Below, piece by piece: positions 15,502-44,437 of a DNA stretch of 64,000 nucleotides; position 1 is the stretch's first letter, and each line of letters begins with the position of its first letter. The stretch spans positions 11,966,001-12,030,000 of the forward strand of contig OU015569.1 in assembly GCA_907165135.1 (NCBI GenBank), read 5' to 3'. Under the pieces are notes generated by a model. It had not been told where the DNA came from. It worked only from the letters and a program-made list of their open reading frames with translations, and ran no database searches. This DNA comes from Oikopleura dioica (taxonomy: Eukaryota > Animalia > Chordata). The translations under genes and the position numbers were made by a program.

Positions 15502-17068
15502 TTAGAGTTCATCGTTTCCTCGCTTGATTTTGAGCAGCTCGACGTCGAAGAGAAGGGTGGCGCCGCCGGGGATGACTCCTCCAGCTCCTCGGTCGCCGTA
15601 GTCCAAGTGAGGTGGGATCGTCAGTGTTCGCTTTTCGCCGATGCACATGTCCAAAAGGCCCTGAAAATCAATGGTCAACAAAAAGGAAAAGATCTAGTCA
15701 AGATCGTCAAGAAAAATTGGGGCGGATTGCAAAAATTAGAAGAAAAATTGAAGTTATTGAAGTCGAAATACCTGGTCCCATCCTTTGATGACCATTCCAG
15801 CGCCGAGGGTGAACTGGAAGAGTGGTCTCCGTTTGCCCAAGTCGCCGTTTGCCCAAGTCGCCGTCTGCCCAAGTCGCCGTTTGCCCAACTTGGGCAGACG
15901 GAGATCTTAGGCAAACGGCGATGTGAATTTGTTTTTAAATTGATTGGTCATAAAATGATAGAAGTAAGGCGACAATTTCATTATCACCACTGAGTCTGCT
16001 AATTGCGGTCTGATTTGCAGAGACTTTCAGGTGAAAACAAAGGTTGTCCTGTGATGTCTTTTGAACGTTTTTTAACAGTGGATCCTTGACAAGACCACCA
16101 CAATTTTATTAAATTGTTTTTCGATAGTTGTACCCGATTTTCGAATGAATTCTTGAGCATAAACACGTAAATAAGAGACGAAATGAAAAAACAGTATCGT
16201 GGACTCTAGGGAAGCTTTCCGAATTATGACATCGTTTACATTGATAAAGAAGAGCCTTCGTAATGGATGGTCTAATTATGAGAGTCGCTTAATTCTCAAT
16301 CAAAGTCCTAATAAACTATTCCCGGAAGAGTTTATCAAGAAGAAAAAAGGCTCCGGTTTACTGAGACTGGATCGTTATTCGGTTGTCATAAGATAATTTG
16401 TGCATTTGATGTTTGTAAATCAAGCCTGAGTACTCCTCTTCGCTGGGAAGAGGTTTTGGGAAGAGTTTCATCAGTTTTCCCCTTTTTCTCTTTTTCTCAC
16501 TACTCACAATGATTGTTTTCCCTCAGTTTCAGTCTGAAATAACTCCAAAAATAGAACGAACCGATTATAAATCGCAAGAAACAGCAATATGTAAAACCAT
16601 CAATTCAACCAAGTTGGGGATTAGCGCTTGTGAGGACTCGGCGCATCCATCGTTTCCTCAATCTATAGGCCTCGTACGTAAAACTAGCGATTTTACTTTA
16701 CCACTTAAAATCTATCATATCCTGCTGGTTTTGATTTCATAATTCAAGATGAGAAATTTCCCGATTTTAGTAATTATAAACTGAAATCAAAGTCTCTTTT
16801 GCGCTCATAAGGTTCTGAAACCTTGAATTAATCTCTTTAAATTGAATTATGATTATATTTTCAATTTGATCGCCGTCTGCCCAAGATCGCCGTTTGCCCA
16901 AGTCTCCGTCTGCCCAAGTTGGGCAAACGGCGATCTTGGGCAGACGGCGACTTGGGCAAACGGCGACTTGGGCAAACGGAGACCACTCGAACTGGAAGGG
17001 TTGATTTCTGTCCCGGCTGGAGTCGAACTTCTTTCCGTCAATCAAAGTGCCAGTGTAGTGCATCGAGC
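15502..17068 (-). pseudogene. ER-type FKBP PPIase (FKBP2-like), 5'-truncated and interrupted by a MULE-like element
   Basis: [25 protein letters not shown][insert][65 protein letters not shown]. Ends in an xDEL ER-retention signal. No signal-peptide exon found upstream, and LDYG replaces the usual LGYG/LAYG. Confidence 0.75.
15820..16988. mobile_element. Non-autonomous Mutator/MULE-like element
   Basis: About 100-bp TIRs starting gagtggtctccgtttgcccaa, built of tgcccaagtcgccgt repeats; 9-bp TSD GAACTGGAA at 15811-15819 and 16989-16997. Confidence 0.9.
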
Positions 17069-17291
17069 TCATTTCAAAAAGCTGCAAAGAATGGAGAAAT
17101 CAGAAAACTTGAAATTGAAAAATAATCTTCAGGAAAATGATTCTCAAATAAAATTCCTCGAAGAAGAAGCTGCAAAGAAAAATGCAGGTTGCATGGATGG
17201 GTGTCGATGAGGGAGGAGCACTAGCGGACGAAGCGGACAAGTCAACTTGCAGAATGGTGCGATAAAAAAACGAGAATTCGAAAAACATTTT

Positions 17292-19872
17292 TTACGTAAC
17301 TGTATTATCAGAATCTGAGATAGATGGAGCAAGTTTTTTTCTGAAAATATGAATGAGAAAATGAACAATTGCACAGGCGCCCACGAACCAGCTTAAACAT
17401 GTGGACCAGAAAGTAAATCTGCTCGCTTTATTTTCTTTCTCTTCGTCATCTTCAATCCGGAATGGACCAAGAGTGACGAGGTGTTCTGGATGATGGTCTA
17501 ACGAAGAAGCTCGCCGTTTTCGCCGATCGGAAGAAAAGATTGGGTTGGTGAGATCGCCTAACCGGCAAGTTGATTGACAGGCTGGGTCTTACTGAGGGTT
17601 CTCTTTGTTAGTTCTTCGTCAATTGACCTCAATGCACGTGGTCGGTTCAATAGACCACGGCGACTTTGAGCCGCCGTAATTTCTCTTGTGATAATCCATT
17701 TGACCTGATTTTTGTAATGTGAGCTTAGATGACTAAAACGAACCACTTTGTGAAATTTTGGAAGTTTTCTCAAAAGTGGTGGCATTTTGCAGTGGATTTA
17801 TCTTTCACTCTGCAGCTGAAAATCTTGATAGATGAGTGTTCAAGCTTTCCACCGATATGTATTATAACATTTTGCTTGCCGGAAACGCAAGTTAGAGCTA
17901 GAAGTCTTGAGCGCTCTTTATCACACTCCGACCCCTTGTTTTGAGCGCTTAGTCGCTCGCCCGTGTATTGAGAAGTTAAATTCTTGAGATTGAACCCGTG
18001 GCATTAGCTTTTCGCAGGTCGCAAATAATCACATCGCACTAAAACTAATGTCAGCCTTCGTTTGGAAGTGATGATTGCCTGAATGTAGACGAAATTGGAG
18101 CCGGGAAACCTCAGCGTCTTCGTCTCGAAGCGATCTTCCTTGTTGAGCCGTGGCTGGAGAAAAGTAAAGGAGTCCGCGGGACAGCCGTTGTACATCATTG
18201 GATAGGAAACAGTGTTGCTAGAGAGAAAATAAAGAGAGTTGAAAAGTGAGTCAAGTTACAACTAACTTGGGTTCGACAGAAGGAGCCGACCAGCAACTCT
18301 TCGTGAAAATGTAAAAATAATCCATTTGAGTGATCACTTCTGCACCGAGATAAATGCGTTGGTTGAGGGATTTCGGCAGAGGAAAGGATTGAAATGGGTA
18401 TCTTAAAATAAATTAAAGAATTATCTTCCATGCGTTTGTTTATTTTTACCTGGTTAGATAACTGGAATTATGGTAGACATTCAACCTGAAGAGGAAATCG
18501 CCCTCGTTTTGAATCGCTCCCATTCCTCTTTCAAGGTCACTTATCAGTAATCACTCTTGCTTTTACCAAATTATTCGTTGAAAAAAATTCAACTTGTGAA
18601 TTATTTTTTGTTTTGAACCGTTCCCTGTCACCATAAAGTCCGAGATAACATAAACGGGCATAATTTGCGCGGACACTTGCCAACTCGTCTCATTCACGTA
18701 CTTGTTGTCGATTCGACCGAGGCGATCAATCACGCATCGAAATAAATAAATTTCGCCGTAGTCTCTGTAAACGCCCCCGGTCAATGCTGGTGCTCGGCTA
18801 AATTTCAAGTGCTTTTAATATTTCTTTTTGTCGGAATCTGACCTTAGGTTGTTCTCATAAATGAACTTGGTCGGCTGGTTTTCGTCGTATCTCATTCGCG
18901 TTTCGCACTCAGTAAACCTGAAATTAGAAAACACTGGCTATCTTACTGGAAAGAGTAGAATACTTACTTGTACGAAAAGACGACAAGTGGCACTCATCAT
19001 GTCGAAGCCGAGCAAATAGTCGCCAAGACTCGATTTCGGCATTCTCACAATAAAACGGTCGTTGATCGTGTCGCATTCAACGCTTGGAGTGTATGGCGGT
19101 AAAAGTGTCGCCGTCGTCGATGTTGTCGTGCTCGTCGTCGTTGTTGCTTGTGCCCCGAAGAAGCCTTCGCAGCCTTCCGGGCGTTGACACATGTACCCAT
19201 CTTAACTTTCGAGATGAGCAATGAGCAAATTACGATGAAAACACAGCTTGCTTTTTCTCGCAAAATTCTCTTCTATATAAAATTATAATAGATTATTTTT
19301 AAAGATAAAAACCGGTTTGAACTGGGCGCGTCCGGCAGAACCGGTTAGTCAATAATTTGACCTTTGATCCAAGGTCCTTATTGACCTTGATTCGCGCTAT
19401 GGAACGTACTTACTGTATCCTTAATATCGCAATCTTTGCCGTAAAAGCCGCTCAAACACTGGCACCAATAACTGTTCCATTTATTCTCGCAATTGGCACT
19501 TCCGGACGCAAAGCATGGTTCCAGGATCTCGCACTTATTGAGCCGCGTGTACATGAAGTGATCAGTTTGATCCGGGTCGCCGAACACTTCAAACGCCTCG
19601 GCCCAGTCGCAAGTTTCCTCGTTGCATTCTCGCTCAAGATCCGCAGGCTGCCCTTCTTCCGCTAGGGTGTCGTCTGGTGCGGAAGGGTCCGAATTCATTC
19701 GCCTTAGAATCAAAATCTAGCCAGTTCCTCATTTTCAAGAAAAAAAAGCTTCCAAAGATAACTTACTGTGTCTCATCAAAAATCCACTGGCTTCTTCTTT
19801 GCTTATTTCAGGAAGACTTTGGACAGCCAAAGCACTCAAAGCGAAAATACTCAAAAATAGTCGAAATGCCAT
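17292..19872 (-). CDS. Type I membrane/secreted Gla-EGF-ZP domain protein, multi-exon
   Basis: Signal peptide MAFRLFLSIFALSALAVQS; Gla LAEEGQPADLERECNEETCDWAEAFEVF; EGF (YWCQCLSGFYGKDC); Thr-rich linker; ZP-N (VECDTINDRFIVRM..FTECETRM..YENNL..FRC); ZP-C (FRLNVY, CWSAP, MYNGCP, DRFETKTLRF, VYIQA); RRKRR furin site; EHP-like VTLGPF; TM helix and short tail. Confidence 0.8.
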
Positions 19873-20637
19873 TCTCTTTACAAAATTGGACTCTGCGGTA
19901 AAATCTCGTTTTAAATAGTTCGTATTTTTGTCGTGAACTGGTCGGAACTAGTTGAACTCAAAATCGCGAAAATAGCCCATCTTCAGGGCTCCAAAACTCC
20001 AAAGTTTGCATTTTGGTCCTATCAACTCTTACTATTTTCAGATTTCTTGGACCCTAATCTTAAAATTTACAGAAGATTTTTTTTATTTGATAATTTTTTC
20101 TTTAGAAAATTTTTCAATAAACCAAGGTACCTATTTTTGACTATTCATTCCTATAAAATGCCCTGCGGGCATAGCCCAGACGCCACAAGCCCTACCCTAA
20201 GTAAATGTCCTTAGAGTTAGCTTTCAAAAAAATGTATCATATGCCACTATTGTAAAGGGTTGAAATTTCAAAATATTTGGTTCACTTTCAAAATACACTA
20301 ATTTTCTGCAGCTTTAGTCGCAATTTCCGGGAGATCGAGAAGAGATAGCCAAAAAGTGCATGAGGAGTTTTTCGCTCCAAATTTTCTGAGGAATCCAAAA
20401 ATGCGGGTCAAAAAAAGAGCCTGAGACTTGGCCAAAATCGACCACCCTAGCCTTAAGTAGGAACGACATCGCTGATTTCCCATTTTCCATGAGCAAAGTT
20501 CGCTGCTCCACCGATTCCAATGACGAGGACTTCGAAATTCTAGTTCTTGCAGCCGAAAGCGGAAACTCAGGAATGCGTTAAACGCTAGGTAGTATATTTG
20601 AGCTGGCTCTTTTATTAGAAAATGTCCAAAAGTTCCA

Positions 20638-20935
20638 AAAGTACCAAAACTTTGGATGCTCCGCCTTTTCGATCCAGTTTAGCTATCAGGGCGTGTGATA
20701 GTGGAAAATGATCGTTGCGAAGAGAGCTAGGTGTGCATCTAGGTTTCATCCCTTCAAAAAATATTTTCAACCCTTTATCACTAGTACCTGATTTTCATAA
20801 AAGGGATGAGATTTTTTTCGAGGGATGAAACCTAAATGCACGCCTAGCTCTCGTCGCGACGATCATTTTCATGTATTGCATGTCATGATAGCTCAAGCGA
20901 CATGAAAATGGTAAGCGTCCAAAGTTTGGTACTTT
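20638..20935. repeat. Degenerate inverted repeat with ~125-bp arms (old MITE)
   Basis: aaagtaccaaaactttgga..gagctaggtgtgcatctaggtttcatccct versus agggatgaaacctaaatgcacgcctagctc..tccaaagtttggtacttt. Confidence 0.65.
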
Positions 20936-21202
20936 AGTAACTTCCGTCACGTTTTATGACCTCATAAGTTCGAAAATTCGCCAATCTTTCCCACTCATCC
21001 AGGGTAATTTTTTACATTCTTTCTTATGAGCCAATAAAAAATGGGGTAAGGATTTCACTCAGAAATCCTTATTGAAATTCGTCAATGTGGCAAAAATGAC
21101 TTCATTCTGAGATACAATGCTAAGAATTTTTATTGTATCAGTCGATGCAAAATGATAAGGATACACGACGTTTTCAGCAAAGCGACGAATTCAGCAGGAC
21201 AT

Positions 21203-22459
21203 TCACTGTCGAGGGGCAGAGGCTGACTTGAGCGACCCGACTTGCTTCTCCAGCATATCTTCAATTTCTTTCTCCAATATCCGCTCTTTGAGATTCTCAA
21301 TCTCGATCTTCAACCTTTCGTTTTCATTTAAAAGTTCTGCCAACCAATTGTTCTTTTCCACCAACTCTTTCTTGAGGCTTGCTTGTTCCGCCATGTTGAG
21401 CGATCTAGGTCGGGGCTGCAAATCTGAGCGAGAGGAAGTTCCCCAAGTTGGAATCAAAGTGATTGAATAGGCTTGCGGAAGAAGATACCATCTTTTTGTT
21501 CTCATGTTCTGGAATTGCTCGGACGGTTGGAAATTTCCCTTGCACTCTTTTCGGGGCGAGATACTACACCGCGCTACTAGCCAACATATGGGGGCGCAAC
21601 GGAGCGCGCGCTGATATCAAAAGCATCTGAAAGAGCAAGGAAAACCGACGGCACTGAAAATGTAACGAATGTAACGAATGTAACGAAAACAACAAAAACA
21701 TGTCTTTTTCTCGTTACATTTTCAGTAAAATTCTAGAGATTTTTTGTTTTTCTTATTTCACCCCCTTGAGTTTCCTACCATTTCACCCGCGGAGCGGGCG
21801 TTTTCACTGGATTTATCTCTAAGAGACAAACTAAATCAGATAATTAACCTTTTTCTATACTACTGTGCACTTTTTTTTTATTTATATGCTCTTTTAGGGG
21901 TGTTCTAATGTCATTTGAAATGATACTCCAGAATATCGCTTTTTGGAAAAAGTTTCTAGAATCAGCTGATTAACAACAACATGTCTCTGTCTTCGTTACA
22001 TTTTCAGTAAATTCGTTGTATTCGTTACATCCGTTACATTCGTTACATTTTCAGTGGCGACCAGGAAAACTTCTCGTAGTTTTAAATAAATTAATCAAGC
22101 ACATGATTAAACTAATAATTATATACTAGCTCGCCTCCAAATGAGTGCAAGGGAAATGTCCAATCTCCCGAATTGCTCGTTGACCAAAGGAAAAAACTCG
22201 TTGTTGTCTCCGTAATAAACGAAGTCGTCGTAGCATTTGTGGCAGTCTCTCATCATTTCGGAAGAGGCGTAGAATGCCTGGTCGACAGGAATTCTGATTT
22301 GAGAGCCGGAATGAGAGAAGAGAGTGTTTTGGAGAATGAATTCAGAATTATCGATTCGGTCGAGCACCATTTGGTGGAAGTCAATGGCTCCGTTGGGATA
22401 AAGATAGGCGCCGGTGACGGTCAACGGACGGGAGAAGGAGAGGTTCGGGTGAAGAAGGA
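21203..22459 (-). CDS. Second copy of the terminal (His/Asn) exon of the kinase-peptidase gene, split by nested transposons and extended by a coiled-coil tail; alternative exon or pseudo-exon
   Basis: LLHPNLSFSRPLTVTG..HQMVLDRIDNSEFILQNT..VNEQF | NMRTKRWYLLPQAYSITL parallels 22714-23108 and has the same phase-1 AG acceptor. Confidence 0.6.
21521..22169. mobile_element. MULE-like non-autonomous element with 9-bp TSD, containing a nested element
   Basis: About 49-bp imperfect TIRs ggacggttggaaatttcccttgcactc.. / ..gagtgcaagggaaatgtccaatctccc; TSD GAATTGCTC at 21512-21520 and 22170-22178. Confidence 0.85.
21646..22062. mobile_element. Nested MITE with 8-bp TSD (hAT- or Merlin-like)
   Basis: TIR core cactgaaaatgtaacgaatgtaacg / cgttacattcgttacattttcagtg; TSD AGGAAAAC at 21638-21645 and 22063-22070. 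Confidence 0.8.
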
Positions 22460-22713
22460 CTTAATATGTCAATTATATTTTTATCGTTTCTTGACAGACC
22501 TCTTTGATAATCAAAATCGGCTTGCAGTCACTATACAGTGTATAGTATACACTGTGCAGTGTACAATGTACATCGATAATAAAACAAAGAGCAAAATAGC
22601 TATTTCTGTTCTGGTTGGTTTCTGGACAGGAGCTTTCTCTTCGCCGCTTTGGTAATAGTCTACTGTAAAATGTAAAAAATTTTCACAATTTTTATTTTCA
22701 CGATCACGTGTTT

Positions 22714-25700
22714 TTAATAAAAAATGATTGTTTTTTCAGTCATTGAGTTCTCATTGATTCTAGTCAGAGTAATTGAAAAAGCTTGAGGCAGAAGATACCA
22801 TTTTTCTGTTTCCATGTTGAATTCTTCGTTAACTAACTCAAGAAACTCGTTGTTGTCTCCATAATAGACGAAATCTTGGTAGCTGTTGTAACAGTCTTTC
22901 ATCATTTCTTCATCGGCGTAGAATTCTCTTGAAACTGGAATTCTGATTTGAGAGCCGTAATGGTCGATGAGCGTGTTTTGGAGAATGAAATCGGAGTTTT
23001 CGATTCGGTCCAGCACCATTTGGTGGGAAAGTATTTCTCCGTTGCTGTTGAGATAAACGCCGGTGACGGTAAGGGGACGGGAGAAGGAGAAGTTGTGGTG
23101 GAGGAGCACTGAATTTTTAATTTTATTTGATTTTTAGTTTTGAATTTCGTTACCTTGCTCGAAATCAAAATTGGAAGGTATCGAGAAGTGGTTCCTTGAG
23201 TTGTCTCTGATAATTTGCCATCCACTATCATTCAAATAAGTCCTTAAGGTGGTAGAAACAGCTTTTTTGAAAAAAGCCGATTTTTGAACAGCGCCCGAGC
23301 TCAGCCAATCTTAGATTTTTGAATTCTCTCTTCGATTTTAGTTAGATTTATCTTAGATCTAAGAACATCTGTTTTTAAAATTAATTTTTGTTTACTCAGT
23401 TTATCGGTAGAAAGCGAAACATAAACCCATCTCGTCGAAAATCCCGATTTTCGCCCATTTTCAAGCACGATTATCTCGAGACTTGTGATTAACCGAGAAT
23501 TTCTTATTTCATAATAAGATACTTGAACCCTTTTTCTAGGAGCATCTATGATGTAAATTCCGTTATCATAAAAAATGATAGTGTTGGGAGTTCGATTGCA
23601 ACTTCTGTATCAAATTTTCGAAATTTTGAATTTGAAACAGATTTTTTTCGTGATACCCTTAAGTAATCTTCCTACCTAAGTTATTAACGATGATAATGTG
23701 ATCCAAACAAATCTATCTAATCGGGGTTCAACCGTTTATTTCACGATTTTAAGCCTCGATAAAATTCGAAAATTTAAAATTTTTCCCAAAACTACAACTT
23801 TAAAGACAATTTAAAGGACATTCCAACATAGTGAGGGGGTAACTTTTTATAGCGTTTTTATTCTTTGTGTCCTAGGCTTTCAGAATCTTAGAAAAAATCT
23901 TTAGTATTCCATCTTTGGCAAAAGCTGTTTCTACCCCCTTAACTTCAATCTTCTGAGAAGCATTGCAATTTCGTTGGTTTGAAATTTTTGTTCTTCGAAT
24001 TTCGGATTGAGATTGAAGCCAGCCAAACTCCGCGGATAAATAACCATTGTCAAATTTGTGAAGATTTTTTCAATAGTATAATTATCTTTCATTTTAGATT
24101 CATCAATGTCCAAATCATTTTTGAGTGCCCATCTCAAAAGCACCAAAACTGTAATAGGGACACAGAGATTGCTTTCTTTTTGGTTTAAAACATTCTTCGT
24201 CACGTTTTTGAAGTCGAAATTGATTTGTTTCGTCAGTTTTTGTTTCAGACTGGCCATTGCAGCTGATTTCGTCAAATTCGGATCGTCAAGGCAAAAATCA
24301 GAAGACGCGTTTTTTAAAGAAATGATTTTTGTCAAGTTTTGGATTTTTGAGATTGATGGTCTTAATTTGTTTGAGAGCCAGCCAGCATTGCAAGTCTTAG
24401 AAAGATTATTTTCTTTTTTATGAAAAGTAAAGACTTACCTCAAGTTCTTTTTTGATGATTTCTCTTTCTTTTTCTTCGATTGGTTTGAATAAAAGAGTCC
24501 AGGCCGTCTTCCACTCGCAAAGAATAAAAATATGAGGAAGAGAGCAATGATCTGCGGGGTTTCCGCCTATCTGCGAGCCAAAAGAAAATGCAGGAGACCC
24601 AGCATCTACGAAAAAAAGAGATAAAACACGAGCATTTTTCAACAAGCTCAAAACTTACATAAACAGTAGCTATTTCTAAATCTGCTTCCTCTCCTCGCGT
24701 AACCCATCTCCTGATAACTCTCTCGTCCAGTCGTTTCGTAAATAATGCTGAAATCGATCCATTTGGCTTCTCCATTTTTCAGAAGGACATTTTCCGGCTT
24801 CTCATCGAAATGAACAATTCCAATTTTCCGCAAATACTCTCTTCCCTCTTGGACGCCAATCGCAATTTTCTTCCTTTCGTCCAAATTCAACTGATTTTTC
24901 TTCAATTTGCTTCTCAAATCCGCGTCGCATTTCTCCATAATCGTAATCCATCCAAGACAGTCTTCTTTCTCCAAGTCGCTACTCAAAAAGACTTCGATGT
25001 TGCAGAAATTCTTTATCACGTTTTTGTGAAAAGGAATCACTCGGGCGTCGTCATTTTTGTCGTTTTGGGCAGTTCCGTATTCTTAAAAATAATAAAAAAA
25101 AAACTTTAAGAAATAAAAATTACCTTTCGAAAGATGAATTTTAAACTCCAATTCTTCATTCTCCGCAAATAACGCGGGATCAAAAGCCTGAACCCGAACA
25201 GCAAATTCCAATTCTCCGAATTTTTCTTCCAAAACAAGCGCTTCTCCTCCAATTGAAATCTCCTGAAAATATTTATCGAGAATCCACTCTCCGGTTTCTT
25301 CTTTTAATTCTGAACGTTTAATTTTTCGTCCTTCGAAGCCTGGATTTTTGTCGAGAATAATTTTTTGAAATGAAGTTACTCTCCATTCTTCCTGAACTTT
25401 GTTTCCCCAAAAGTGAGTTCCAGACAGTTTTCCTTTTCCATCTTCGAAAATGACCTCCTCCCATGCAGCACAAAAATCATCTTCAAACTGCATTCTGTCC
25501 AGCGACAAAATCAACCTGTCCAAATCATCTCGGCTCGTTTTTCTCTTCAATTTCTTTTGAAACTCTTCCAGCCATTTTTCAACAACTTCTCTTGTCAGTT
25601 CTTTTGGATGCGACGGAACTTGCAACATTTTTACAGATTCATGGGACTCATCAGATTTTTGAGAATTTTCATTCTCTGTTTCGGGTTTAGACTCATACCC

Positions 25701-26074: not shown

Positions 26075-27097
26075 ATTTTTCTTGTTTTTTTATTCGACGT
26101 TTGAATCGTTTGAATACTATTTATGCACCTTGCACAGAAGAATGATTCTTTTTTGGACAACAGTAAAATGGAGAATGCAGCAAATCTTGAACATGTGATC
26201 TTTTGTGTTGTTTAGGCAAGCATTTCTTTCAACAATGGGGGCTAAAATATATCCAGTTAATTTCAGAAAAAGCCATTTTCAAGCTCGGCCAATCAAAAGG
26301 CGCGAAATCAAAAAGGCAAAGTGGTGGCGCTCTTTTGCCTCGCCGCTAGATAGCGCCTGTATCAAAAATTAGATCTGCTAATTATTTGTCAATAATTCTT
26401 TGCTTACCAAGACATCGCTCGCCAACTGGTCATGAAATGCTTTTCCGAGTGGCAGTGTCATAAACGACAAGAAGCGGAGACTCAATTGCAGAGAAATTAT
26501 GTCCTGAAATAATTCATAAAGTCCCATTGAACGATTTTCCTTTACCGAGAATCTGTTCTTTCCGAAATCGGAAAGTCTCTCGATGAAAAGCTAGAAAAAT
26601 TTTTGACGGGAAATTTCGCTGCTTTGCCTACCTCTTTGAGGCCGATATCGAGGAGGATGTCAAAAGTGTATTCCATTTGTGAGTCGTAATTTAGAAACGC
26701 TCGTTTTTGCAAGTCGAAATACGTCGCCGCTTAAAGAAGATATTATCGAAGGCTCAGTTTTTCAATTTCTTTGCTGGGCTGAGCTAAGGTCGAAACTGAG
26801 CTCAGCTGAGCCAGCTTTATCCTGCAAATTGTGGAGCTCCTCTGGCTGAGATGAATACGAGCTGAGCTGGGCTTAACTGAGCCTATTCTGAAAAAAGGCT
26901 CAGCTGAGCTTAGGCAACATCTTTTAGCGATGAGCTGAGCTAATCTTTTTTTAGCAAATCGTTGAGCTAAGCTCATCATCTTAGCTCAGAAAATTTGCGA
27001 CACAAACAAAAGCCAAAAATTCTAAAAGAAAAAATTCACCTGCAAAATGACGATTTCTCGAATTCCGGCTCTGATGAGCTCGACCTGGTCGTTTTGC
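26075..27097 (-). pseudogene. Decayed partial duplicate of the NR1I receptor 3' half (LBD exons and 3' UTR)
   Basis: High similarity to ~32570-33780; lacks the segment equivalent to ~33050-33230 and has no DNA-binding domain. Confidence 0.8.
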
Positions 27098-27527
27098 TAG
27101 AGCGCTTTACCTAAAATGCAATAGCTACTTAGTCTGATATGTTTTCTAAGTACTTACATTGGTTACAACTTCATTGTTGTTTTCATCGGGCGAAGGAGCG
27201 GTGTGTACTCTCCTGAGGAAGAGAAAGTAAAATCGCCGATTCGGAGGCTCTCTCGTTGATTGTAGTCGCGTCTGGCAAATGTCCGACGATTGCGCTCAAA
27301 TCGAACGGGTTGTTCTCTTCTGGTACAGGCGCTTCTTGACGGATGCTGCTGGAGGACCTTCATCGTAAAGACGAAAGAGCAAAAATAATCCCGTCAGATT
27401 TGGATCTTGCAAAGCCGCTTTGTCGTGTAAACTAGAGGAGCTTTTACGAAGATTAGGAAAAGGGCATTCAGCAAGAGGCGATTTGACTTTACTCACTTTC
27501 AGAGTCGATCTCGATCTGATTTTTTCG

Positions 27528-30500
27528 ATGCGCACGAGAATCAAGGAAGAGATTTGCCCAGTAGAAGGAGACAGTGTCGAAAATGAGGCTTCGAATGAAT
27601 GTGTGGAAAACGAATCGCCACGAAAGGGCCAAAAAACGAACCAACTAGCGAATGTGAAGTGCCTCGAATGTCACTGTGTCGGAACAGTGATGAAAACAGT
27701 CGATGGAATCGTCCTTTCTCCGAATAAAGTGAAAAAGACTTTGATCGATCTCGGTGGAGGATTTTTCATGCCGAACTTAAAAAAAATGATGCCGGTGGAG
27801 AAGGTGAAACTTGCAAATCAAAAGGCGAAAGAATTCATGGAGGGTTTTAATGTAGCCGTGGAAAAGAGTGAAGACAATGGACCCTCCAAGGGATTTTTCA
27901 AAAAGATCAGAGAGAGGTTCACTAGAGGCATACGAATGGCAGAACGTGAGAAGAAAGTAAGGCTTGCCGATATGCTGGAGCGAGAAAAGAAAAAAACTCC
28001 GGCGAGAGATGCTCCCGATCAGTTCAGGGGAATCTTCTCTGACGAGTTCGAAGAGAACCATTTTTGGCGATCGAAAAAACGTTTTTCTCTTCAGTAAGTA
28101 TGCTTGAAACTTTGTCCGCAACTGTCTACGTTTTTATTTCTTTTTCAGCGGAAACGCAACTTCGAGTCAATTTGCTGTTTACATGTTGTTCGGATGCGTT
28201 TTCTGGGGCACCATTGTCGGCATAAGTATTCAAAGCTATAAAAACTCAGTTGAAGAAACTTTCAGCGAACTATTATTCGATGCTTGCTGCTCGTATTCAA
28301 CCAAGTTATTTGACAGAGGTTTGCCAAGTCGGCTTCAAAAATTGCACTGTTACGAATGATATGGACTACTGTGCGCATCTACTTCATGACTGTATTGGAA
28401 CGGGAAATTTTACTCAACCAGCTGCGATAAAATTACCGGAAGTAAAAAAAGAGTCAACACTCATTTTCACCAAGAAAGAAAACGAAATCAATCAAATGCG
28501 ATGTAAGAAACGAAAATTCTATGCCATGTTTTTTATAAATAATCAAAATCAGAATTCTTGATTTCCTAAAAAACGCATCAAAGACCGGTATATCTGCCGC
28601 CATCTTTGTTCTCAAACTCTCGTCTTGGAATCAACAATCAATAATGCTTTTCCACCTTGTGATCGAATTTGCTTTGAACTGACTAGATCACATGACTTTG
28701 CCGGAGAAGTTTGCCCGCTTGAAAAATATTGCAAAAAAGGATGTCCTTGTCCTTTTTATCAGTGTGAAAAAATTGAGAATGTGCAAACGCTTGTTCCTGT
28801 CTTTGATTTAAAGAAAGAAGAAATTATTGAAGGAAGGTTGAGATTCTTTGCTAAATCTATATTTTCTTGGGTACCGCTTCGTCAACCCTTCGAGTCCCAA
28901 AAGCTGATGATCTTTCCCTCAAATTAATCACGAAGAGAATCGAGAGTCACTACGTCAACTTGAAAAGATTCAATATGTCCGAAACTATACCTGAGTATAA
29001 AAATATCCGATCCGCTTTACCGATCTTCGAGCACAAAACGGATCAAGTTCTATTAATTTGATGAATGCAACTCTAGCGGAGAAACTTTTTCCTCATGAAT
29101 GTTTTCGATTGATTAAATTAACAAAATAATAACAAAAAATTAGTAAAACAACGAAAGTCAATCGGTGCTACTTTTCTCAATGGGGAACATTATCTGGTCG
29201 ATGCTATTGGAAATCTGATGATAGTGAAGGAAAGTGGCGATTCTTCAATTTTTATTCCAAATAGACACAAAAAAATGTAAGCTCATATTCTTTCGTACTT
29301 TCCTTTGCTCGAGTCTGAATAAGAAATTCTTCTTGAATAGTGGCTTCTTCGTCTTCCATTTTGGTTCTTCGATTGGAACGCATCAAATTGAAATTCGCAC
29401 AAAAGAAAAGGACACAAAAGTTTTTCCAGTTGTCGTCATCTGAAAATGGTCAGAAAGATAACCTTCTTTCAAACACCTTTTACACTCTCTTACAGACTGA
29501 AACTGACAGTTCTTAAAAAAATTTATGACCAGTCAAAGCCGCCCAACTGGAAGAGATGAAAAATGCTACTACTACGCCCCTGACTACAATTTGAACCGTT
29601 TTGAAGAAGCCCAAGGCTACATCGCCAGCAACCACTTCAACGCAAAAGTGTCTTCAACCAGCTTCAAGGGAGTATTCTATTTAATGAGCGTGAGGCTAGG
29701 AGATCATTATATCAAGCTATCGACGACTCGGGCCTTGAACAGGATCAGGAAGGAGGAAGAATTGGAAAAAGGATGGAGAAAAAGCGACTTTAGGGTGCCC
29801 ATAGAAATCAGAGACCTGGATCTGGTGCATGTCGTTCCACTGGAATGTGTTGAAGTTTATTATTGATCATATTATACGTTACATATTTAAAGACTTCATT
29901 TTAACTCAAGAAAGATCCATTTAGGGAGGCTTTTGCTGATACTCGTGTCAAGAAAAATAGAACTCTCAAATACACTCTACTCAGTGTTACTTGAGGTCGA
30001 GGGAAAATTTCTGACTCTGGGTCGCGAGTGGATCGGTTCTCTTGTAAAATACGATAAACATCATGTCTGTTATTCCAACATGTTTGCTCAAGACGATCCC
30101 AATTACACAGATCTTGAAGGTTACAACAAGGATGAATGTGAATATTTTGGTCAAGGAATCGTCAGCGACGAAAGGATCCTTATTCAAAACTTTGTTTTCG
30201 ATTCTTTCTTCGAAATCAAATTCAATTTCGGAAAGGATTTATTAAATCATTAAATTCAAGAAAAGATCTAATTAACTTGAATCAGTCACAATCCGCTAAA
30301 AAGAAATAGTCGATCTCGAATTTGTTCAACTCGAAGCGTCAAAGAAGATGCACGTGACAAGTAATCCCTTTTTCGCTTTTCACGACGATGTTTTTCCTGC
30401 TTTTGCGAAGAATGCCGCCGCCCAGATAAAATTTCCTTACAGCAAGACGAGCAAGTTACTCAAAACAATCATTCCACGCAATTACTTTTCCTCGCTTAAA

Positions 30501-32406: not shown

Positions 32407-32853
32407 AAATACGCGATCACAGTAGCTAAAAAAAGCTTTTTCCACGAATTTTCATACTATCTTGTGATTCACAAGTAATAATTTACAACATAATTAATAA
32501 CATTGATGCCCTTGTTGCCCTTGCTGATATTTTCAGGTTACAGCAGAATTAGTAATATCGATAATATTTTTTTTGTTTTTTTTTTATTCGACGTTTGAAT
32601 CGTTTGAATACTATTTATGCACCTTGCACAGAAGAATGATTCTTTTTTGGACAACAGTAAAATGGAGAATGCAGCAAATCTTGAACATGTGATCCTTTGT
32701 GTTGTTTAGGCAAGCATTTCTTTCAATAGTGGGGGCTAAAATAAAGCGGTTAATTTCAGAAAAAGCCATTTTCAAGCTCGGCCAATCAAAAGGCGCAAAA
32801 TCAAAGTGGTGGCGCTCTTTTGCCTCGCCGCTAGATAGCGTATGTATCAAAAA

Positions 32854-35825
32854 TTAAATCTGCTAATTATTTGTTAATATTTTTTGCTTACCAAGACATC
32901 GCTCGCCAACTGGTCATGAAATGCTTTTCCGAGTGGCAGTGTCATAAACGACAAGAAGCGGAGACTCAATTGCAGCGAAATTATGTCCTGAAATAATTCA
33001 TTAATCCCCATTGAACGATTTTTTCTTTACCGAGAATCTGTTCTTTCCGTATTTCGCCTTGGTCCGCGGCGATATCATCAGCCGCTCTAGAAGCTCGGCA
33101 TAGGAGTCTTGAATCGTTCCGATCAGCGTCGGGTTCTGGAGCCCAGCCCGATCCGGAGAAAACAGAACCAGAATAAGCGTCAAAAGAAACTCTTCTTTCG
33201 AAAGATCGATTTGCGTAAATTTCACCAGGAAGTCGGAAAGTCGCTCGATGAAAAGCTAAAAATTCTTGTGACCGGAAATTTCGCTGCTTTGCTTACCTCT
33301 TTGAGCCCGATATCGAGGAGAATGTCGAAAGTGTATTCCATTTGCGAATCGTAATTTACAAACGCTCGTTTTTGCAGGTCGAAATACGTCGCAGCCTAAA
33401 AAGAAATTATCGAAGGCTCAGTTTTCATCAAATTTTATGTTGAGCTGAGCTTGCTGAGCTAAGTTGAAACTGAGCTGAGCTAAGCTAGCTTCATCCTGTA
33501 AATTATGGAGCTCCTCTGGCTGAGCTTAACAGGAGCTGAGCTGGGATTAACTGAGCCTATTCTGAAAAAAGCTTAGCTGAGCTTAGGCGACCTCTTTTGG
33601 AGCTGAGCCAAGCTGAGCTCATTTTTTTTTTAAATCATTGAGCTCAGCTCGCTCACCTAACTTAGCTCAGAAAATTTGCAGCACAAACGAAAGCCGAAAA
33701 TTCTACAAGAAAATATTCACCTGTAAAATGACGATTTCGCGAGTTCCAGCTCTGATAAGCTCGACTTGGTCGTTTTGCTCGAGCTGGGCGAACTCCGGAA
33801 TCTGCTTTGAAAAGTTGATCAGCTGGAGCAGTCCCGAGTTCATCACGTCCGACATGTGTTTCAAATAATTGATGTTGATCGTGATGCTTTCGTTCTCGCC
33901 GGTTCTCGGGTCCTCGATTCGCACCACGTGAAGGCCTGAAAAAAAGAGTAATTACGAAAATATTTCGAAATGTCAAAAACACTTTCTCAAAAAAGAACAA
34001 GCACCCGATTAACCTTTTTTCAATTTCATTTTGTATTTTCAATATTGAGCAATTCGAAAATTGAAAAAGACTAAAAAGAGAGGTTTTGAAATCCAATTTT
34101 ACGCTTCATAAGTTATCATTTTTTTCAATAGAACTATCAATTGGAGTTGTAATTATGAATTTGGGGTTCGAAAATACGGGGGAGGTTTCATGAGCCGGCA
34201 AGAAACGGCGACAAAATTAAGGTTTTTAATTTTAAGCAAAATTTGAGGCATTTATTTGTCAACGACATTTGACAAACCTAAAAGTCGCTTCTCGATCGAG
34301 TAAATCATGTTGTGGACATCGCTTCTGAACCCAGTTCGCTGCCAGTTGGGCATGTCTTCGCAATTCCGAAAGCTCTGGCTTCCCGCGCACTGCTTTTGAA
34401 CCAGGTCGTACGCAGCCACGACTAGAATTTATCATCAATTCTCTTCAACTTTCGTCATTATTACCCTTGCTGATTTTTTCTTGCTCGACTTGTGGGATGT
34501 CAGGATTTTCGTTGAGAATTCGTTTTATTCGATTCTAGTTATATTTTCTTATTAATTTTCAAGAAGAAAGCAAGTTACCTTTTGGATGATTTTGCGCTTT
34601 TTGTTGAGCTCCAAATCCGAAAGAATACAGTCTCGTTTCATCCCTTTTGTCAAGCATTTTTGGAATCTAAAATGAAGGAAATTAGATGTCAATTTATTCA
34701 AGTTTCGGATTAAACCTGCAGGCCTGGCACTGGCGTCGATTCTGGCGAGTTACAGCGCAATTCTTGGAGTAGGCGCAGAGGAAGTTCTTGTTGTTTTTAC
34801 CGTGCGCCGGAAAAAGCCCTGAAAACGAGTTGAATCGCCGCGCTAGAATAGAACCAGGGGCGGTGGCGACGAACGAACCGTCTGGCAGGTTCAAACTAGA
34901 ACTGTTGTTCTTTTTTTGATTTCGGCGCAGTCAGCGTTTTGGTTAAATGTCAAGAGAAAAGTCACGTTCGCGTTTTCAAAAATTAGATTTTACAACTTTT
35001 TTTTGGTGATTTCATTTTTTCTACTAAATTTTGGGCCAAATTTCTTTTTGATGATAAAAAAATTGCTTTTATAAAATTCAGCCTTGCTTACCTTGCAACC
35101 TTCACAAGTCATGGCGTTGAAGTGGTAGCCTGTTGCGAAATCTTCGCAAACAACGCAAATCTGAAAAAGAAAAAGAGGTAAAATGAGTTTATCTCCGTCC
35201 GCTAAGCTCAGGGTCGCCGCCGAGCACCCTTTTTCTTTTTTGGGGGTCGGGTCGGGTTAATTGAAAATCAGTAACTTGGAAGGATGTTTCTATGAAAACT
35301 TCAGTGCTCGAGTCAAGATCAAGGCCTTCTTGTAATGCAGCGAGCTGAAAACTTCCGCTTTTTTTCCCGCTGATTCCCGTGGGAACGAAACAGAATGGCG
35401 GCTAATTGGGTTGAAAAGGGTTCGGCCGTGATACACGCAGCCATCCCCCCTTGGGACTATGTGCTCGGCTTTGTTCTTTTTGACGCTAAGTACTGGTGGC
35501 ATAAGTTGAGCATAATTTAATTAAGTAGATTTATTAATCCTTTCTATTCTTTTCTATTTAATAATTCAATTGAGAAGTTCTTCAGTAATTTGAGGCTTTG
35601 GCTCCACAACCTGTGTAGAAAACCTGAGTCAGGGCTCTGAAAAAAGCTTTTTTAAAGAGCTCTCTTTCAGGATCCTGACTCAGGTTTTCTACACAGGCTG
35701 CTGAGCACCGCTACCCTTTTCCACCAAAAACCCACCTTTTCGTCGATATCAGAGTCGACTTTTGGCTGAAGCTTCTGATGCGGGGCCAAACTGGCCAGCT
35801 GCGGCGGCATCAACGCGTGATCCAT
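32854..35825 (-). CDS. Nuclear receptor, NR1I (VDR/PXR/CAR-like), multi-exon
   Basis: [52 protein letters not shown]; [30 protein letters not shown] and FSPDRAGL. One 1-nt frameshift at 34794-34798. Confidence 0.88.
35596..35707. mobile_element. CTGACTCAGG-family palindromic MITE in NR1I intron 1
   Basis: cctgtgtagaaaacctgagtcagg..cctgactcaggtttttctacacagg. Confidence 0.8.
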
Positions 35826-36330: not shown

Positions 36331-36869
36331 AAAGTCGGTCGGGCGGAAGGTCAATTCGGTCGATAAAAATTCGATTGAAGAAAGGAAAAAATGGTAATTT
36401 TAATGAATGTACCTTTTGGGCGAATCGTAACCGGGTCTCTTAAATTTTCTGTTCTGAGGAAGGTAGTATCTGGCGACTAAATAGATGAACGATTGACCGT
36501 GGAGCGCCCACGTCGCAAGCATGAACTCGATCGACCTCTAGACGAGTTTTCTTATTCTTCTGCTTTTCTGAAGACCCCGAGGTCAGAGCTCGCCGATCCC
36601 AGCATTGCCAAGGTCAGTTTTGCACCGATTGACCCGGGGAGAAACGGCGACTTTGGGATTAATTGGCGATTTGGCGAGTTTTGGAACATGGTTGCGCAGG
36701 AGTTATGTAAGCGAATGCTCTAGGGAAGCGCCGCGCTCGTCACGTATAGTGCTGATTAAGGGATTCAACTAAGGAACGTTACACAAAGGTCGAGCGTGAC
36801 CTTGCTGACCCACTCAACGACCTAGCACGAAGCCAATAACATAGAATTTTTAGCAGTCAACATCAGTCC

Positions 36870-36985
36870 TTTTGTCCGCGGACTGTGCAGAAAACCTAAG
36901 TCAGGTCCCTGAGTTTTAATTGTGCCAAAGACGGTTCAAAGCTTCATCTCTGACTCAGGTTTTCTACACAGGTTGTCGAGCCCAG
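36870..36985. mobile_element. CTGACTCAGG-family MITE, intergenic
   Basis: ctgtgcagaaaacctaagtcagg..ctgactcaggttttctacacaggttgtcgagcccag. Confidence 0.75.
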
Positions 36986-37619
36986 CTCACGGCAGACTCA
37001 AATGAAGAGTGGCGACAACTCTGGAATACAGTAAAAAATTCCCAGCATGCGAAGTCACGGATGAGCGCGTTTCCAGAGACAATTTTCACAATTTTGATCG
37101 ATGTTGGTGTTTTCGGTCAAGGCTCAGTCCTTCCTTTTTCAAAGGGGGCGCAATTATTTTGAAGAGCTTAATTCGCGGAAACTATTTTGACGAAAATTTC
37201 TTCCCTTTCAATTTGTTCAGTAATTACATGTCAAAGAGTTCACCCCTCGGTGGTCGAATGAAAATCAACATTTCGGGCCCAAGATTGTCGATTTTTTACG
37301 ATAATGCTTTCAAAGAAGGTTGTTTGAAGCAATAGAAAAAGGTTCTTTATTGCCAAAGTTTACGGTTAGGTTAAATAAAAAGTACAGTGGAAGAAAGCTC
37401 ATCGGTTAGGTCTTGATTCTAAATTTTAGAGTCTAAAAATACCCTTAGTTTTTTGAGAGTGTGAAAGAATTTAACTTTCGCGGAAGTAGAGTCCGTGTTT
37501 GTTCCAAAACAAAAAGTATCAAGAACAAAAATTCAGCTACTAGAGAAAAGACTGTTTGGTTTGATGGAATGTCGGCAGCTCTAGAAAGTGTCCAAATTTC
37601 CGGCCAGCTGATCACAGCA

Positions 37620-39381: not shown

Positions 39382-39585
39382 ATAAAGATAATTTTTTTTG
39401 CCAAAACAAGAGTGGTATTTTTGTTGATCGAAAATTATTAAAACAAAGAAAAAAGATACCATGTCCACCTGAGATCTAGCATACAGTAGAACAAATAAAT
39501 AGTTTATTATAAAACTGTTTATTTTTTCAAGTAATTTTGATCAAAAATATATCTCGTAACAAAAAAAAACATGCTTTTATCGCTA

Positions 39586-42500
39586 CTATAGGCTGCAGGA
39601 ATTATCATGGGCGAGGAAAACGACTGGAGCGGCGCCTTCTCCTTCTACTTGAGCGATAATATCAGTCCAGACGGGATTTTCTTCGGAGTCTCATTTCTGG
39701 TTCCAAATTTGTAAAAAATATAAAACCATTACAATTACTATAACAGTAATGAAACTAGAAAATTGATCTGATAAAAAAGAGTCCATATAAAACTACTCTT
39801 ATTAATTAAAAACGAAGAAACCATTTTCTAAATTGATTTGGTGGACGAAGCCCAAAGAGTCTGGAATGTCGCTGTAACTTTGTTCAAAATTGCTGGGAAA
39901 CAGAAAAATATTGTTCTCCACCAAAATCGCCGATGAAGCAAACATAGGCTTAAAAGCCACTTTTAAAAATGCCGAGCAAAAGAACTTGCCTCAGAGAGAA
40001 AACCAGCGATCGACCATTCGTCGTTCAAAAGTTGGTAGATTCTGTCCAAATTGGCGGCCCAATGGTCGTTCCCGCCGATCGTCAAGAGCTTTCCTGAAGG
40101 GAAGCCGATTGTAGAAAATCGAATAATATTTCCTCTAAAATTCGCGATTATAAAGAAAAAATAAAACTTCTGCTCTCACCGCGGATGAACGGGAAGTGAA
40201 TTTGTCCACCCGTTTTCAGAAAGAATCTCGACAGCTCCGTTAGACCGCAATCCCGCGATAGCGATTGCTTTACCATTGTATAGAGCCAGTCCTCCGTCCG
40301 CGTGAACGACCTTGGTTGCGTTCAGAGGCTTCGTTTCCAATCCGTCGAATAATTCGCAGCGTTTCTTTGTTTCTCTGTCGAAACAGACCAAAACTTCAAT
40401 AAAAATAATATGATGATAGTATAATCATTAAACCGAACTTACCTTTGCTTCCTTGTTCAACAGAAACACTCGCGTGTGCGAATTCATAATCTCCCAAAAG
40501 TCGCACCGACAATTCCTTGAAGCTGCATCCCTCCATCCGTGAAATCTATCGAAATAGCATTAGCAGCTTTTTATTGCTTTTATTTTACTTTGTGGGCATC
40601 ACTGTTGCCTCCGAAAACGTGAACTTGGCCGTTGAGCAAAGCGAATGTCGAGAAAGTAACATAACTAGAAACGTCGCCGGAAAACCCGATCGGCGGGGAG
40701 AAGGAAACTTGTTTGTCGATCGAGCCATCGTGTTTCAAAGCAAAAGGTCTCCTGGCATGAAAATTGGTGTCAAGGGCGTTAATTTGTTTCGAATTTTCCT
40801 CGATTGAATAAATAAAGTTCTTGACTTCCGCGCCACTGTGTAAAATAACCCGCACTCTTTCATCGTTTTTTTCTTCTAGCTGGGCTCGGCAGTCTGAGTC
40901 AGCCTCTGAAAAAGCTAAAATGAAAAGCCGGTTTTTTTTTCAAAACGGAGTCGCGAAGGATGCCGATTAAAAAAAAGCATACTTGCGAAGCTACATTGCG
41001 GCTCCGTTTTGAAAAAAGCCGCCACGCGTCTTTTCATTTTGCCTTTTTCAGAGGCTGACTCAGGTAGCCGAGCCCAGTCGTCTAGAGCGGTCATCTCAAT
41101 TTTAGAAGAATTGCTGGGATTCATTCCCTTCAAGTCGTCGCACCACTTTCGACACCGTCTTTTTTCACGACACCATTTTTTGCGACATTTGTTCCATGCT
41201 TTATCCATTTCTGCTTTGTAGTCATTGATTTTTCTTTGTGGATTCTTTCATGGTTTTAAGCATCGATACAAAAATGACAAATGCATTGTTAAAAAACTGT
41301 TCCTCTAGAATTTCTACGAGAATTGCCTCGGGCGCGAGTGTTGAATTCAACTTGAGCTCAACATCGGCTAATTGAGAAATATTTAAATTGAGAACGAACT
41401 GCTCTGAAAAATAGTCAGAATCGAGCCAAATCGACCCATTTTCAAATTTTCCAAAGCTCAGGAAAATAGTTTCATCGAAAAATTGACACTCAAGAATCTT
41501 CATTTCCGATTTTTCTTCCTCAAGTGTGTTCAAAACATTGATTTGAAATTTCAAACTCGTTGTTCGATTGAAATCAAGTTCGAAAGAAGAAATGTGCAAA
41601 AAGTCTTCCGGCAAAGTGAAGAAATTGTCCGGAATGATGGTCTTTTTCACTGGTCCGAATAGAGTGATGGCTGGCTTGGGGAATCGCGATTGGGAAACTG
41701 CGTTTTTAGAGAAAGCTGGAAAAACATCGTCGTGGAAAGCAAAGAAGGGATTGCTTGTGACAGGCATTTTTTCCGTCGCGTTTTGTTGGATGAAATCGAC
41801 TTCTATTCGCTCGAAATCGAGTTTGACTTCAAAAGCAGCGTCGAAAACGTAATTTTGAACGAAAAATCTTTCATTTTGAATTGCTCCGCTGCAAAAGTAC
41901 TCGCATTCGTCGTTGTTGCGTCCGAGAATGTCTGTATAGTTCAGATCATTCTCAGAATAGAGTTTCGAATAGCAGCGTGATTCTTGCTTGTATTTAACGA
42001 GAGATCCGATCCACTCGCTGCCCAGAATCAAAAACTTTCCTTCCGCTTCGAGCAAGAAGGAATATCGCGTGTTCGAAAGACTTATGCTTTGTGCTGGGCT
42101 CGGCAAATAAGCAGAAAACCTGAGTCAAGGTCTTGAAACGGCTTCGCGGCTTTTTATTAGGGCATTTTTGAGAAACTTACTCAGGTTTTTACACAGGTTG
42201 CCGAGCCGAGCCTTCGAGTGACTAAAATGACCATCAGCCGACCCAAGTCAATCTTTGAGGAGTTAAAAAGGGGAGGTGTCTAGAATAGGGTCGGACACAA
42301 AAAAATTTTGACTCTAGAACCGACAAAAAAATTTCAACAAATTTTGCGTGGAAATTTTCAATCAGCAGCCGCCCACACATAATTTGTGGAATTTTTTTTG
42401 TCGGTTCCAGACAAAAAATCACAGTTCTACAACTTTCGACCCCTTTCAAAGGAACAATATGAACAGGATCAAAATTCAATCCCGCTCTCATTTCCGCCGG

Positions 42501-44437
42501 CAGCGCCATCTCGTTCTTTCTCCACCCTTTTTCCAGTTCTTCGTCCTTTCTGATCCTGTTTAAAGCCACTGTGGAGGAGATCTTGATCCATTCCTCGCCC
42601 ATTCTGATGCTCATCAAATAAAACACTCCTTTGAAGCTGACGGAAGATGTTTTGGCGTTGAAATGGTTGCTGGCAATGAAACCTTGCGCCTCCTCGAAGC
42701 GATTCAAATTGTATTCTGGCGCATAGTAGTAGCACTTTTCTGATCTTTCAGTTGGAGCGCTTTGAAGGATCAGAACATTCTTGGTTTTTTTTTTGAAAAC
42801 TATGTTTTGTTTTGACCTTTTTCAAACAACGACAACAGGGAAAATCTTTTTGTCTTCGTCTTTTCGCCGGATTTCGATGTAATGAGTTCCAATCGACGAC
42901 CCAAAATGAAAAACAAAGAACCTCCTTTAAGAACCAATAAAGTTAGGGTTTGGCTAAGGCAAGGACCACGGCAATGGTTAGGGTTAGGGTTAACCCGCGT
43001 GCGCAGATTGGCCCTCTTTTTGGACAGCGCCTTTTGAAAGAGATCTTGAAGGAGACTTACATTTGATATGATCGATTTGGAATAAAAACTGGGGATTTGG
43101 CTGTCTCTTGAATTTCGACAAGATTGCCAATTGCATCAACAAGATAGTGTTTTCCATTGAGAAAAGTTGCACCAGTTGACTTTTGCGTTTTTTATCTTTT
43201 TTTTTTAAAGGAAAATAAGCCGAATATAAAGTGAATGTTTGATTGTTAAGAAAATAGATATTGAAAAAACTTGCGTAAGGAAAGAGAGTCTCCGTCAAGT
43301 TTATCATTTTTTCTTTCCCGCTTTCGCTCAAATCCGAAAAAACCATTGGAAACTTTTTGATTTGAGAGGGACGGCTTGGCCAGCGACCAGTGATTACTTC
43401 CATTCCAAAATACTCGTCTTTTTTGCTCAATTCATCGACTTTAATCGTCTCCGATTTCTGAATGTCAAAAGCAGGCACCATTTTCTGCGGCGAGTGCATT
43501 TTTTCGCACTCGTAAAACGGACACGGACATCCACCTTTGCAATATTTCTGAAAAGGGCAAACCTCTCCGGCCGAATCGAACGCCCTTGTCAGCTCGAAGC
43601 AAATCGACTCACACGGCGAAATTGGGTTAGTCCTCGTTGATTTCAAAACCAGCGTTTTGGAACAAAGATGGCGGCAGATTTTTTGGTCGTAGAACTTTTT
43701 CTTTTTGCAGCGGACGAGATTCACTTCGTTCTCTTCGTTTGAAAATTCTAGTTTTGCAGTTTCGCTTCTGTCAATTGCTGAAATAGGCCCAGGAAGAATG
43801 AATTCTTGGGTTTCGTAGCATTGTTTCATTAGATGGCCGCAGTAGTCTATTTTAGGCTCGTCAACCTGTGTTAAAACCTACGCCAGGGTCCGGAATGAGC
43901 TCTAGTAAAAGGCTGGACCCTGACTCAGGTTTTAATACATGTTCTCGAGCCCAGCGCCCATCGTCTCCATTCGAACGCACTTTTTATAGTTTCGATGACA
44001 AACCGAAGTCAGAAAAGTCTTTACGCCTCGGGATTTCTCCAACGACTGAAAGTTCACTAAAAAGATACTTTCCATCAAACTAAAAAATGATTAAAAATTA
44101 CGGATAAGAATGACTGTCGTCCAAAAAACGCCGAAAACTGCTAGATAAGTGTACTTTTGCGGATCCGTGGCGAATCCATGCTTGCTTAGCTGCAGTTCGG
44201 CAGTTATTTTCTCTTTCCAAGTTTTCGTCTTTTTCAAATCGCGCTGTCGCGTTCGGACGTTTCGAGTTGTCAGAATTTCTTCGGAGAAAAGATACGTTTT
44301 TCCGTCTTTTTGGCGAAGAACTCCGATACAGTCGCAATCCAAACACTTATTTAAAATCAAAAACAAAAGTTATTAATGATAAAGACCTGAATTCTCGGCT
44401 GCTTAGACAAATCATCGTTTTCCTCTTCAATTACCAT
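39586..44437 (-). CDS. Inverted paralogue of the Cys-rich/Kelch type-II membrane protein
   Basis: KCLDCDC; YLAVFGVFWTTV; VCPFQKYCKGGCPCPFYECEK; NRFEEAQGFIASNHFNAK and TSNPFFAFHDDVFPAF shared with the + copy; Kelch-like VHVFGG and AIAG. Confidence 0.6.
40880..41077. mobile_element. CTGGGCTC-family MITE forming nearly all of a predicted intron
   Basis: TIR ctgggctcggcagtctgagtcagcctctgaaaaag / ctttttcagaggctgactcaggtagccgagcccag. Confidence 0.85.
42094..42210. mobile_element. CTGGGCTC-family MITE forming nearly all of a GC-AG intron
   Basis: ctgggctcggc..aaaacctgagtca..ctcaggtttttacacaggttgccgagccgag. Confidence 0.85.
43853..43954. mobile_element. CTGGGCTC-family MITE forming nearly all of a GC-AG intron
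   Basis: taggctcgtcaacctgtgttaaaacct..ccctgactcaggttttaatacatgttctcgagcccag. Confidence 0.85.

Follow-up and report, generated by a model that had tools for sequence, protein, structure and literature searches.

Where new introns come from is a long-standing question, and introns born from transposons have mostly been met either as completed introner families or as isolated examples that lack a history. The locus described here raises that question directly: six TIR elements from four families break coding sequence, all of it on the minus strand, and it must be asked which of them are now introns and by what route they became so. The window, meaning the whole stretch of DNA analysed (64,000 nt; G000:C2:11966001-12030000), belongs to the Okinawa type of Oikopleura dioica. 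An earlier note on this DNA had placed the six elements about where they lie, with extents that are corrected here, and had taken all of them for transposons of several superfamilies converted into introns by a spliceosome that needs little beyond a G at +1. The sequence evidence favours a mixed set over a single system: two elements of a single functional gene that are probably now GC-AG introns (E5 and E6), reached from MITEs in two steps, one plausible candidate (E3), one undecided element (E4) and two insertions in broken gene copies (E1 and E2). This reading is given a probability of roughly 0.7. The elements are listed below, with superfamily labels (MULE-like, Kolobok-like, hAT-like) drawn from TSDs and end sequences only.

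15820-16988: E1, a young, non-autonomous TIR element of 1169 bp, MULE-like by TSD length
21521-22169: E2, an outer element with a 9-bp TSD and a nested inner MITE at 21646-22063
23248-23938: E3, a 691-bp element with GG ends and a TTAA TSD, Kolobok-like
40880-41077: E4, a 198-bp hAT-like MITE, TSD matching at 7/8 positions
42094-42210: E5, a MITE with an 8-bp TSD matching at 5/8 positions
43852-43954: E6, a MITE with an 8-bp TSD matching at 4/8 positions

The hosts number four rather than six, as E4, E5 and E6 lie in one gene. At all six elements the empty site is open on the minus strand, and each element can be removed in frame by at least one G..AG cut, as the earlier note had stated. Together with the 11% of introns that are non-canonical in the O. 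dioica assembly to which the window belongs (PMC8008620), this would suit the view that all six are spliced. The note had also cautioned that permissive donors make chance solutions easier to find, and had proposed a comparison with shuffled controls. Each element with its TSD was inserted in simulation along 3.8 kb of the window's coding sequence; every GN was accepted as a donor and every AG as an acceptor. For E1, E2, E4, E5 and E6, an in-frame solution was present in 67-100% of insertions within 12 nt of the ends and in 53-100% within 6 nt. The corresponding figure for E3 was 33-50%, with only 6 TTAA sites available, and a scar-free cut with an AG/G donor (the slash marks the splice junction) appeared in 7-17% of simulated insertions. 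The caution was well placed: because random exonic insertions usually have a solution, the observed rate is about that of chance, six of six is weak evidence, and in-frame G..AG solutions by themselves mean little in O. dioica.

The high chance rate also counts for the reading that none of the elements is spliced and that all of them disrupt expendable members of large families; every host does belong to a multi-copy family, and RNA yielded no proof of splicing. No listed RNA run contained this stretch, and four runs of another lineage, compared over 5951 bases, gave 32 reads, all less than 95% alike and none with a joint. What can be read from DNA is whether relatives have the site empty, as the note had suggested looking for. 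Empty sites were found for E4 and E5 in two orthologous sequences (L091 and L093), for E6 in two other relatives (L101 and L102), for E1 in a duplicate of its host and for E3 in the proteins of the host's family.

E1 lies in what remains of an FKBP gene.

15517-17067, minus strand: host of E1, a 5'-truncated FKBP duplicate, from similarity and Pfam coverage

The 9-bp TSD of E1 (15811-15819 and 16989-16997) matches at 9/9 positions, its genomic copies are 88-92% identical, and 13 of 15 sampled sites of the E1 family have a perfect 9-bp TSD. The 9-bp TSD and long, G-starting TIR of E1 and of the outer element of E2 are those of MULE/Mutator elements, as judged from the ends only. An intact FKBP copy with an empty site is located 73 kb off (G000:C2:11908287-11908693) and is 95-97% identical to the host. 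The host is regarded as a truncated duplicate because the similarity between the two copies stops at window position 17067, because Pfam FKBP_C coverage of the window copy starts at 12 (12-38 and 50-94, 12-94 overall, against 1-53 and 50-94, 1-94, in the other copy) and because the FKBP N-terminal motif, looked for upstream of the window copy, is missing. The candidate intron of E1 runs from 16988 to 15814. Its donor at the TIR start reads TTC/GAGTGG and has neither an upstream AG nor an A at +3, both of which are reported to be highly conserved in the GA donors of O. dioica (PMC7072748). Splicing of E1 is rated very unlikely. Window positions 14300-17067 form an inverted duplicate of G000:C2:11908319-11909826 (95-97% identical), part of which also matches C4 near 8199000 at 87-90%.

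E2, the 9-bp TSD of which likewise matches at 9/9 positions, interrupts a duplicate, now truncated, that derives from the final exons of the neighbouring kinase-family gene. The exon before these is reduced to about 20 nt, with an in-frame TGA just upstream of this remnant, and the 3' part of the host changes to a block that is 91-94% like 9542-9799. The candidate intron of E2 runs from 22169 to 21509. Its GG..CAG cut leaves a product equal in length to the tandem paralogue, a point in favour of all six being spliced, but its donor is weak (TTC/GGGAGA at 22169) and has no upstream AG. E2 is thought unlikely to be spliced, if less clearly so than E1; the host piece may be used as an alternative last exon. 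The truncated hosts of E1 and E2 count against a part for these two elements in the conversion that the earlier note had proposed.

The case of E3 is more balanced, and two introns can be drawn for it.

23937-23243, minus strand: candidate E3 intron, scar-free, donor AAG/GG, length matching the family
23934-23243, minus strand: candidate E3 intron, canonical GT-AG, adding one Gly, from the sequence

Both solutions use one acceptor, TTAAG at 23243. The host belongs to a large kinase family, for which the genome gave at least 40 matches; no further breaks were seen in the gene. Copies of E3 are 94% identical, and TTAA stands on both sides of the element in the window, the one copy for which flanks were read. 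The TTAA TSD and purine-purine termini of E3 are presumably those of Kolobok elements, as piggyBac elements are taken to begin with CC. The odds that E3 is spliced are put at about even, and it is plausibly the sole case in the window of a G-starting TIR that was really pre-adapted.

E4, E5 and E6 are members of a single abundant MITE family, in which the TIRs begin CTGGG and the TSD is 8 bp long. The family is presumably hAT-like, a label that rests on TSD length; the 8-bp TSD and short TIRs recur in many copies, with TSDs matching at 7-8/8 positions. A TSD of 2-3 bp, or none at all, was considered for this family and ruled out, as intact copies have 8 bp. The note had put the donor G at or next to the start of the TIR, which holds for E1 to E3 and fails for E4 to E6: here C is the first base of the TIR, and for E5 and E6 the TSD supplies the best donors. 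The gene that hosts all three MITEs has a paralogue elsewhere in the window.

39600-44100 (ends approximate), minus strand: multi-exon host of E4, E5 and E6, under purifying selection, of an Oikopleura-specific family
28230-30830, plus strand: paralogue of this host that lacks both E5 and E6

The host exons tested had no Pfam match, and a scan of JGI metagenomes returned only paralogues at 37-46% identity. Three closer sequences were available. L091, a marine metagenome contig that is about 87% identical in nucleotides, is collinear with the host gene and empty at E4 and E5; L093, an orthologue at about 87%, lacks E5; and L092, another contig at about 96%, carries E5 and ends inside the upstream TSD of E4, an end that is not counted as evidence. 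Between the window and L092, both with E5, the 449 codons flanking E5 have a dS of 0.102 and a dN of 0.019 (ratio 0.19, p=7e-8), which indicates that the host is still functional with E5 in place. On the window branch alone, the 20 changes divide into 11 synonymous and 9 non-synonymous (p=7e-4). A search for a close relative bearing E3, E4 or E6 itself found none, so selection after insertion of E4 and E6 is inferred from these 20 changes; the host is likely functional with E6 in place.

Other introns of this gene differ between relatives as well. In a native intron at about 41302-41243 (minus strand), L091 has CAG/GT, while the window and L092 have CAG/TT and an AG/GAA donor six bases upstream, which suggests that a GT donor has given way to a GA one. 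An insertion of about 48 nt that starts with GT in L091 (about 1803-1850, against window 41542) is missing from the window and L092 and is another presence/absence difference of an intron. A palindromic element at 42305-42419, within an ordinary intron of the gene, is absent from L091 and L092.

For E5 the outgroup site is empty, the insertion is shared by a relative, the donor-making mutation can be pointed out and there is a signal of selection.

42087-42211, minus strand: predicted E5 intron of 125 nt, comprising the MITE and parts of the TSD, from orthologues with and without the insertion

The ancestral target is fixed by the empty L091 and L093 as CTCGAAGC. The donor AAG/GC arose when the final base of the upstream TSD changed from C to G, a change that is also present in L092. 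The acceptor AAG/C was kept in the downstream TSD, the first bases of which have drifted, and differently in the window and L092. Cutting 42211-42087 gives VTRSISLSNT, where the family has VTRSIALSNT, and restores the ancestral codons. The 13-codon exon before E5 has three differences from L092, all of them synonymous, while the E5 intron itself has 8 substitutions and 2 single-base indels between the two haplotypes (125 versus 127 nt). Retention of E5 would bring in a stop codon in both. Because E5 is shared with a relative at about 96% and absent from an orthologue at about 87%, and because dN/dS is 0.19 with E5 present, E5 is very probably spliced out. Two other arrangements were ruled out: E5 does not sit in a longer intron or in an exon that is skipped, since the flanking exons are conserved, and E5 and E6 are not the two ends of one big element, since the intervening DNA is host coding sequence.

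E6 follows the same pattern.

43847-43957, minus strand: predicted E6 intron of 111 nt, comprising the MITE and parts of the TSD, from relatives with an empty site

Its ancestral target is GATGGACT, as read from L101 and L102, in which the empty site is ATG GAC. The upstream TSD copy has become GATGG/GCG, with donor TGG/GC, and the downstream copy AATAG/ACT, with acceptor TAG; the terminal CAG of the TIR has decayed to TAA. Removal of 43957-43847 restores the spacing C-x6-DYC, which is kept in all relatives of sufficient length to be read. E6 is probably a transposon-derived intron, and its odds of being spliced are good, a step below those of E5. Under the scar-free cut, all seven TSD mismatches of the two elements (4/4 for E6) fall on the intronic side. 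The simulated odds of an exact G..AG cut arising from random TSD mutations are 0.026 for E5 and 0.008 for E6, under models that were chosen post hoc. This bias of TSD mismatches toward the intronic side offers a test from DNA alone, applicable genome-wide and also to sister genomes.

The results at E5 and E6 bear on both extreme readings. That none of the elements is spliced becomes highly improbable, as purifying selection acts on both sides of E5 between two E5-bearing haplotypes and the ancestral sequence is rejoined exactly at E5 and E6. That all six are spliced because +1G is nearly enough finds some support in the E6 donor TGG/GC, which has no upstream AG and likely means that splicing is relaxed to some degree. 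The GC donors of E5 and E6 (GCTCGG and GCGCTG) match U1 poorly, which weighs against the splicing of these two. Against the +1G reading stand the chance level of in-frame solutions, the upstream AG and +3 A that published GA donors retain (PMC7072748), the truncated hosts of E1 and E2, and the fact that the two best cases have TIRs starting with C and obtained their donor G by mutation of the TSD. It is judged quite improbable. The conversion that the note had described is upheld, on indirect evidence, for E5 and probably for E6. The evidence does not carry it across several superfamilies: these two belong to one family and one gene, E1 and E2 have truncated hosts and weak donors, E3 is a candidate and E4 lacks a scar-free cut.

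For E4, no such cut was found. Its options are CTA/GA (one additional amino acid), GAC/GA (two) and a built-in TGG/GC with the terminal CAG (four), all of them weak, with candidate introns from 41082, 41079 or 41073 to 40880; neither CTA/GAC nor GAC/GAC has the AG before and A after GA that are found in O. dioica GA-AG donors. If its gene still works, E4 must be removed somehow, which would favour broad tolerance of donors. Either a weak donor works here, in support of a more relaxed rule, or the gene of this haplotype was damaged recently; splicing of E4 could go either way.

E4 would also be accounted for if the MITEs were a true introner family, every exonic copy being spliced at once by the built-in GC and terminal CAG, as in the introners of Aureococcus, with the TSD changes as later polish or drift. 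The built-in option, which adds 12 nt, is present in E4, in E5 and at nearly all simulated sites, and the same geometry (4 nt of element and an 8-nt TSD) is illustrated for introners in PMC9860276 Fig. 2F. However, most copies lie outside exons, and frames were open for 40 amino acids on both sides at 5 of about 35 sites of the MITE and, in the E1 family, at 2-3 of 14 sites, against 23-25% of control positions (23% for the MITE comparison), in a small sample of best-scoring copies. Because this enrichment test failed, the CTGGG MITE is not classed as an introner family, and the same result counts against all six elements being ready-made introns. The weak TGG/GC donor and the decay of the terminal CAG in E6 and in L021 also argue against immediate splicing, and this explanation is considered unlikely.

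The L021 copy (L021:1395-1717; G000:C1, near 5588200-5588550) lies in multi-copy coding sequence. Its sole TSD mismatch creates CAG/GC and a scar-free cut, and the pattern is as in E5, with the direction of change read without an outgroup. Two other genes each hold two exonic MITE copies with no good splice solution (L005:1501-1620 and 1870-1972; L017:1498-1615 and 2243-2412); the first of these reads by eye like a ligand-gated ion channel gene.

The preferred reading, a mixed set with a two-step course from MITE to intron, would run as follows. Non-autonomous DNA transposons would enter exons, in a genome dense with genes, no more often than at random, and young insertions such as E1 and E2 would persist as their hosts are redundant truncated duplicates. 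In a functional gene, a fresh MITE may first be tolerated, perhaps as a rare allele or by a built-in cut from the GC four bases into the TIR to the terminal CAG, which adds 12 nt. The next step can be read in the DNA of E5 and E6: single-base changes in the TSD copies gave a G donor upstream and kept or created an AG downstream at the same offset. Splicing would thereafter rejoin exactly one ancestral TSD, leaving the intronic TSD halves and the TIR ends to drift. Tolerance of GC, GA and GG donors matters in this course because one change, from AG/N to AG/G, suffices, whereas AG/GT would usually need two. The relaxed donor rule may mean less that any G will do than that one mutation finishes the donor. 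More tentatively, and on balance doubtfully, this could be a general road, in which ordinary MITEs that are not introners endure in exons by sloppy built-in splicing and single TSD mutations make exact introns, and a large source of the high intron turnover and non-canonical donors of O. dioica.

Intron gain by transposon insertion has already been reported for O. dioica (Denoeud et al. 2010, via PMC3443670 Table 1 and PMC3296678). As far as these secondary accounts go, those cases share with the present ones the species label and the class, an exonic transposon turned intron; the present ones differ in being dated by relatives with and without the insertion and in having TSD splice-site mutations that can be named. 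In the literature covered, no account was found of TSD mutations that later complete the splice sites of an O. dioica intron, Denoeud et al. 2010 and its supplement lying outside that coverage. Introners (Huff et al. 2016; Gozashti et al. 2022) also draw splice sites from TSDs (PMC9860276 Fig. 2B, C, E). E4 to E6 resemble them as MITEs with TIRs, TSD splice sites and the 12-nt option, and are alike in outcome. Introners are spliceable on insertion and usually enriched in genes; the CTGGG MITE, in contrast, is not enriched in open frames, and its best cases required later mutations. Fritillaria borealis has MITE-derived non-canonical introns (Henriet et al. 2019, via PMC11282704; PMC13326754), which, from what these sources relate, are likewise larvacean, bear TIRs and TSDs and go with altered splice-site tolerance. 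Fritillarid introns are there described as mostly escaping GT/AG (AG-AC, AG-AT), with a diverged U2AF, whereas the ends here are G..AG and the cases few. E5 and E6 would take their place as GC-AG introns among the known non-canonical introns of O. dioica (PMC7072748, PMC8008620).

Several other features of the window were recorded. A 163-bp stretch at 17628-17790 has at least 40 genomic matches at 79-96%. Positions 26076-27103 and 32570-33784 form a local duplication (84-94%), and at about 33050-33228 the second copy contains an insertion. A long, GC-richer, cysteine-rich coding stretch includes, at 49429-55181, tandem units that measure about 1890 bp and are 95-98% identical. Additional TIR elements lie at 20630-20943, 35597-35710 and 36875-36985, at 8961-9542, just beyond the 3' end of a gene, and at 7747-8825, with a perfect 8-bp TSD and CAGGG ends.
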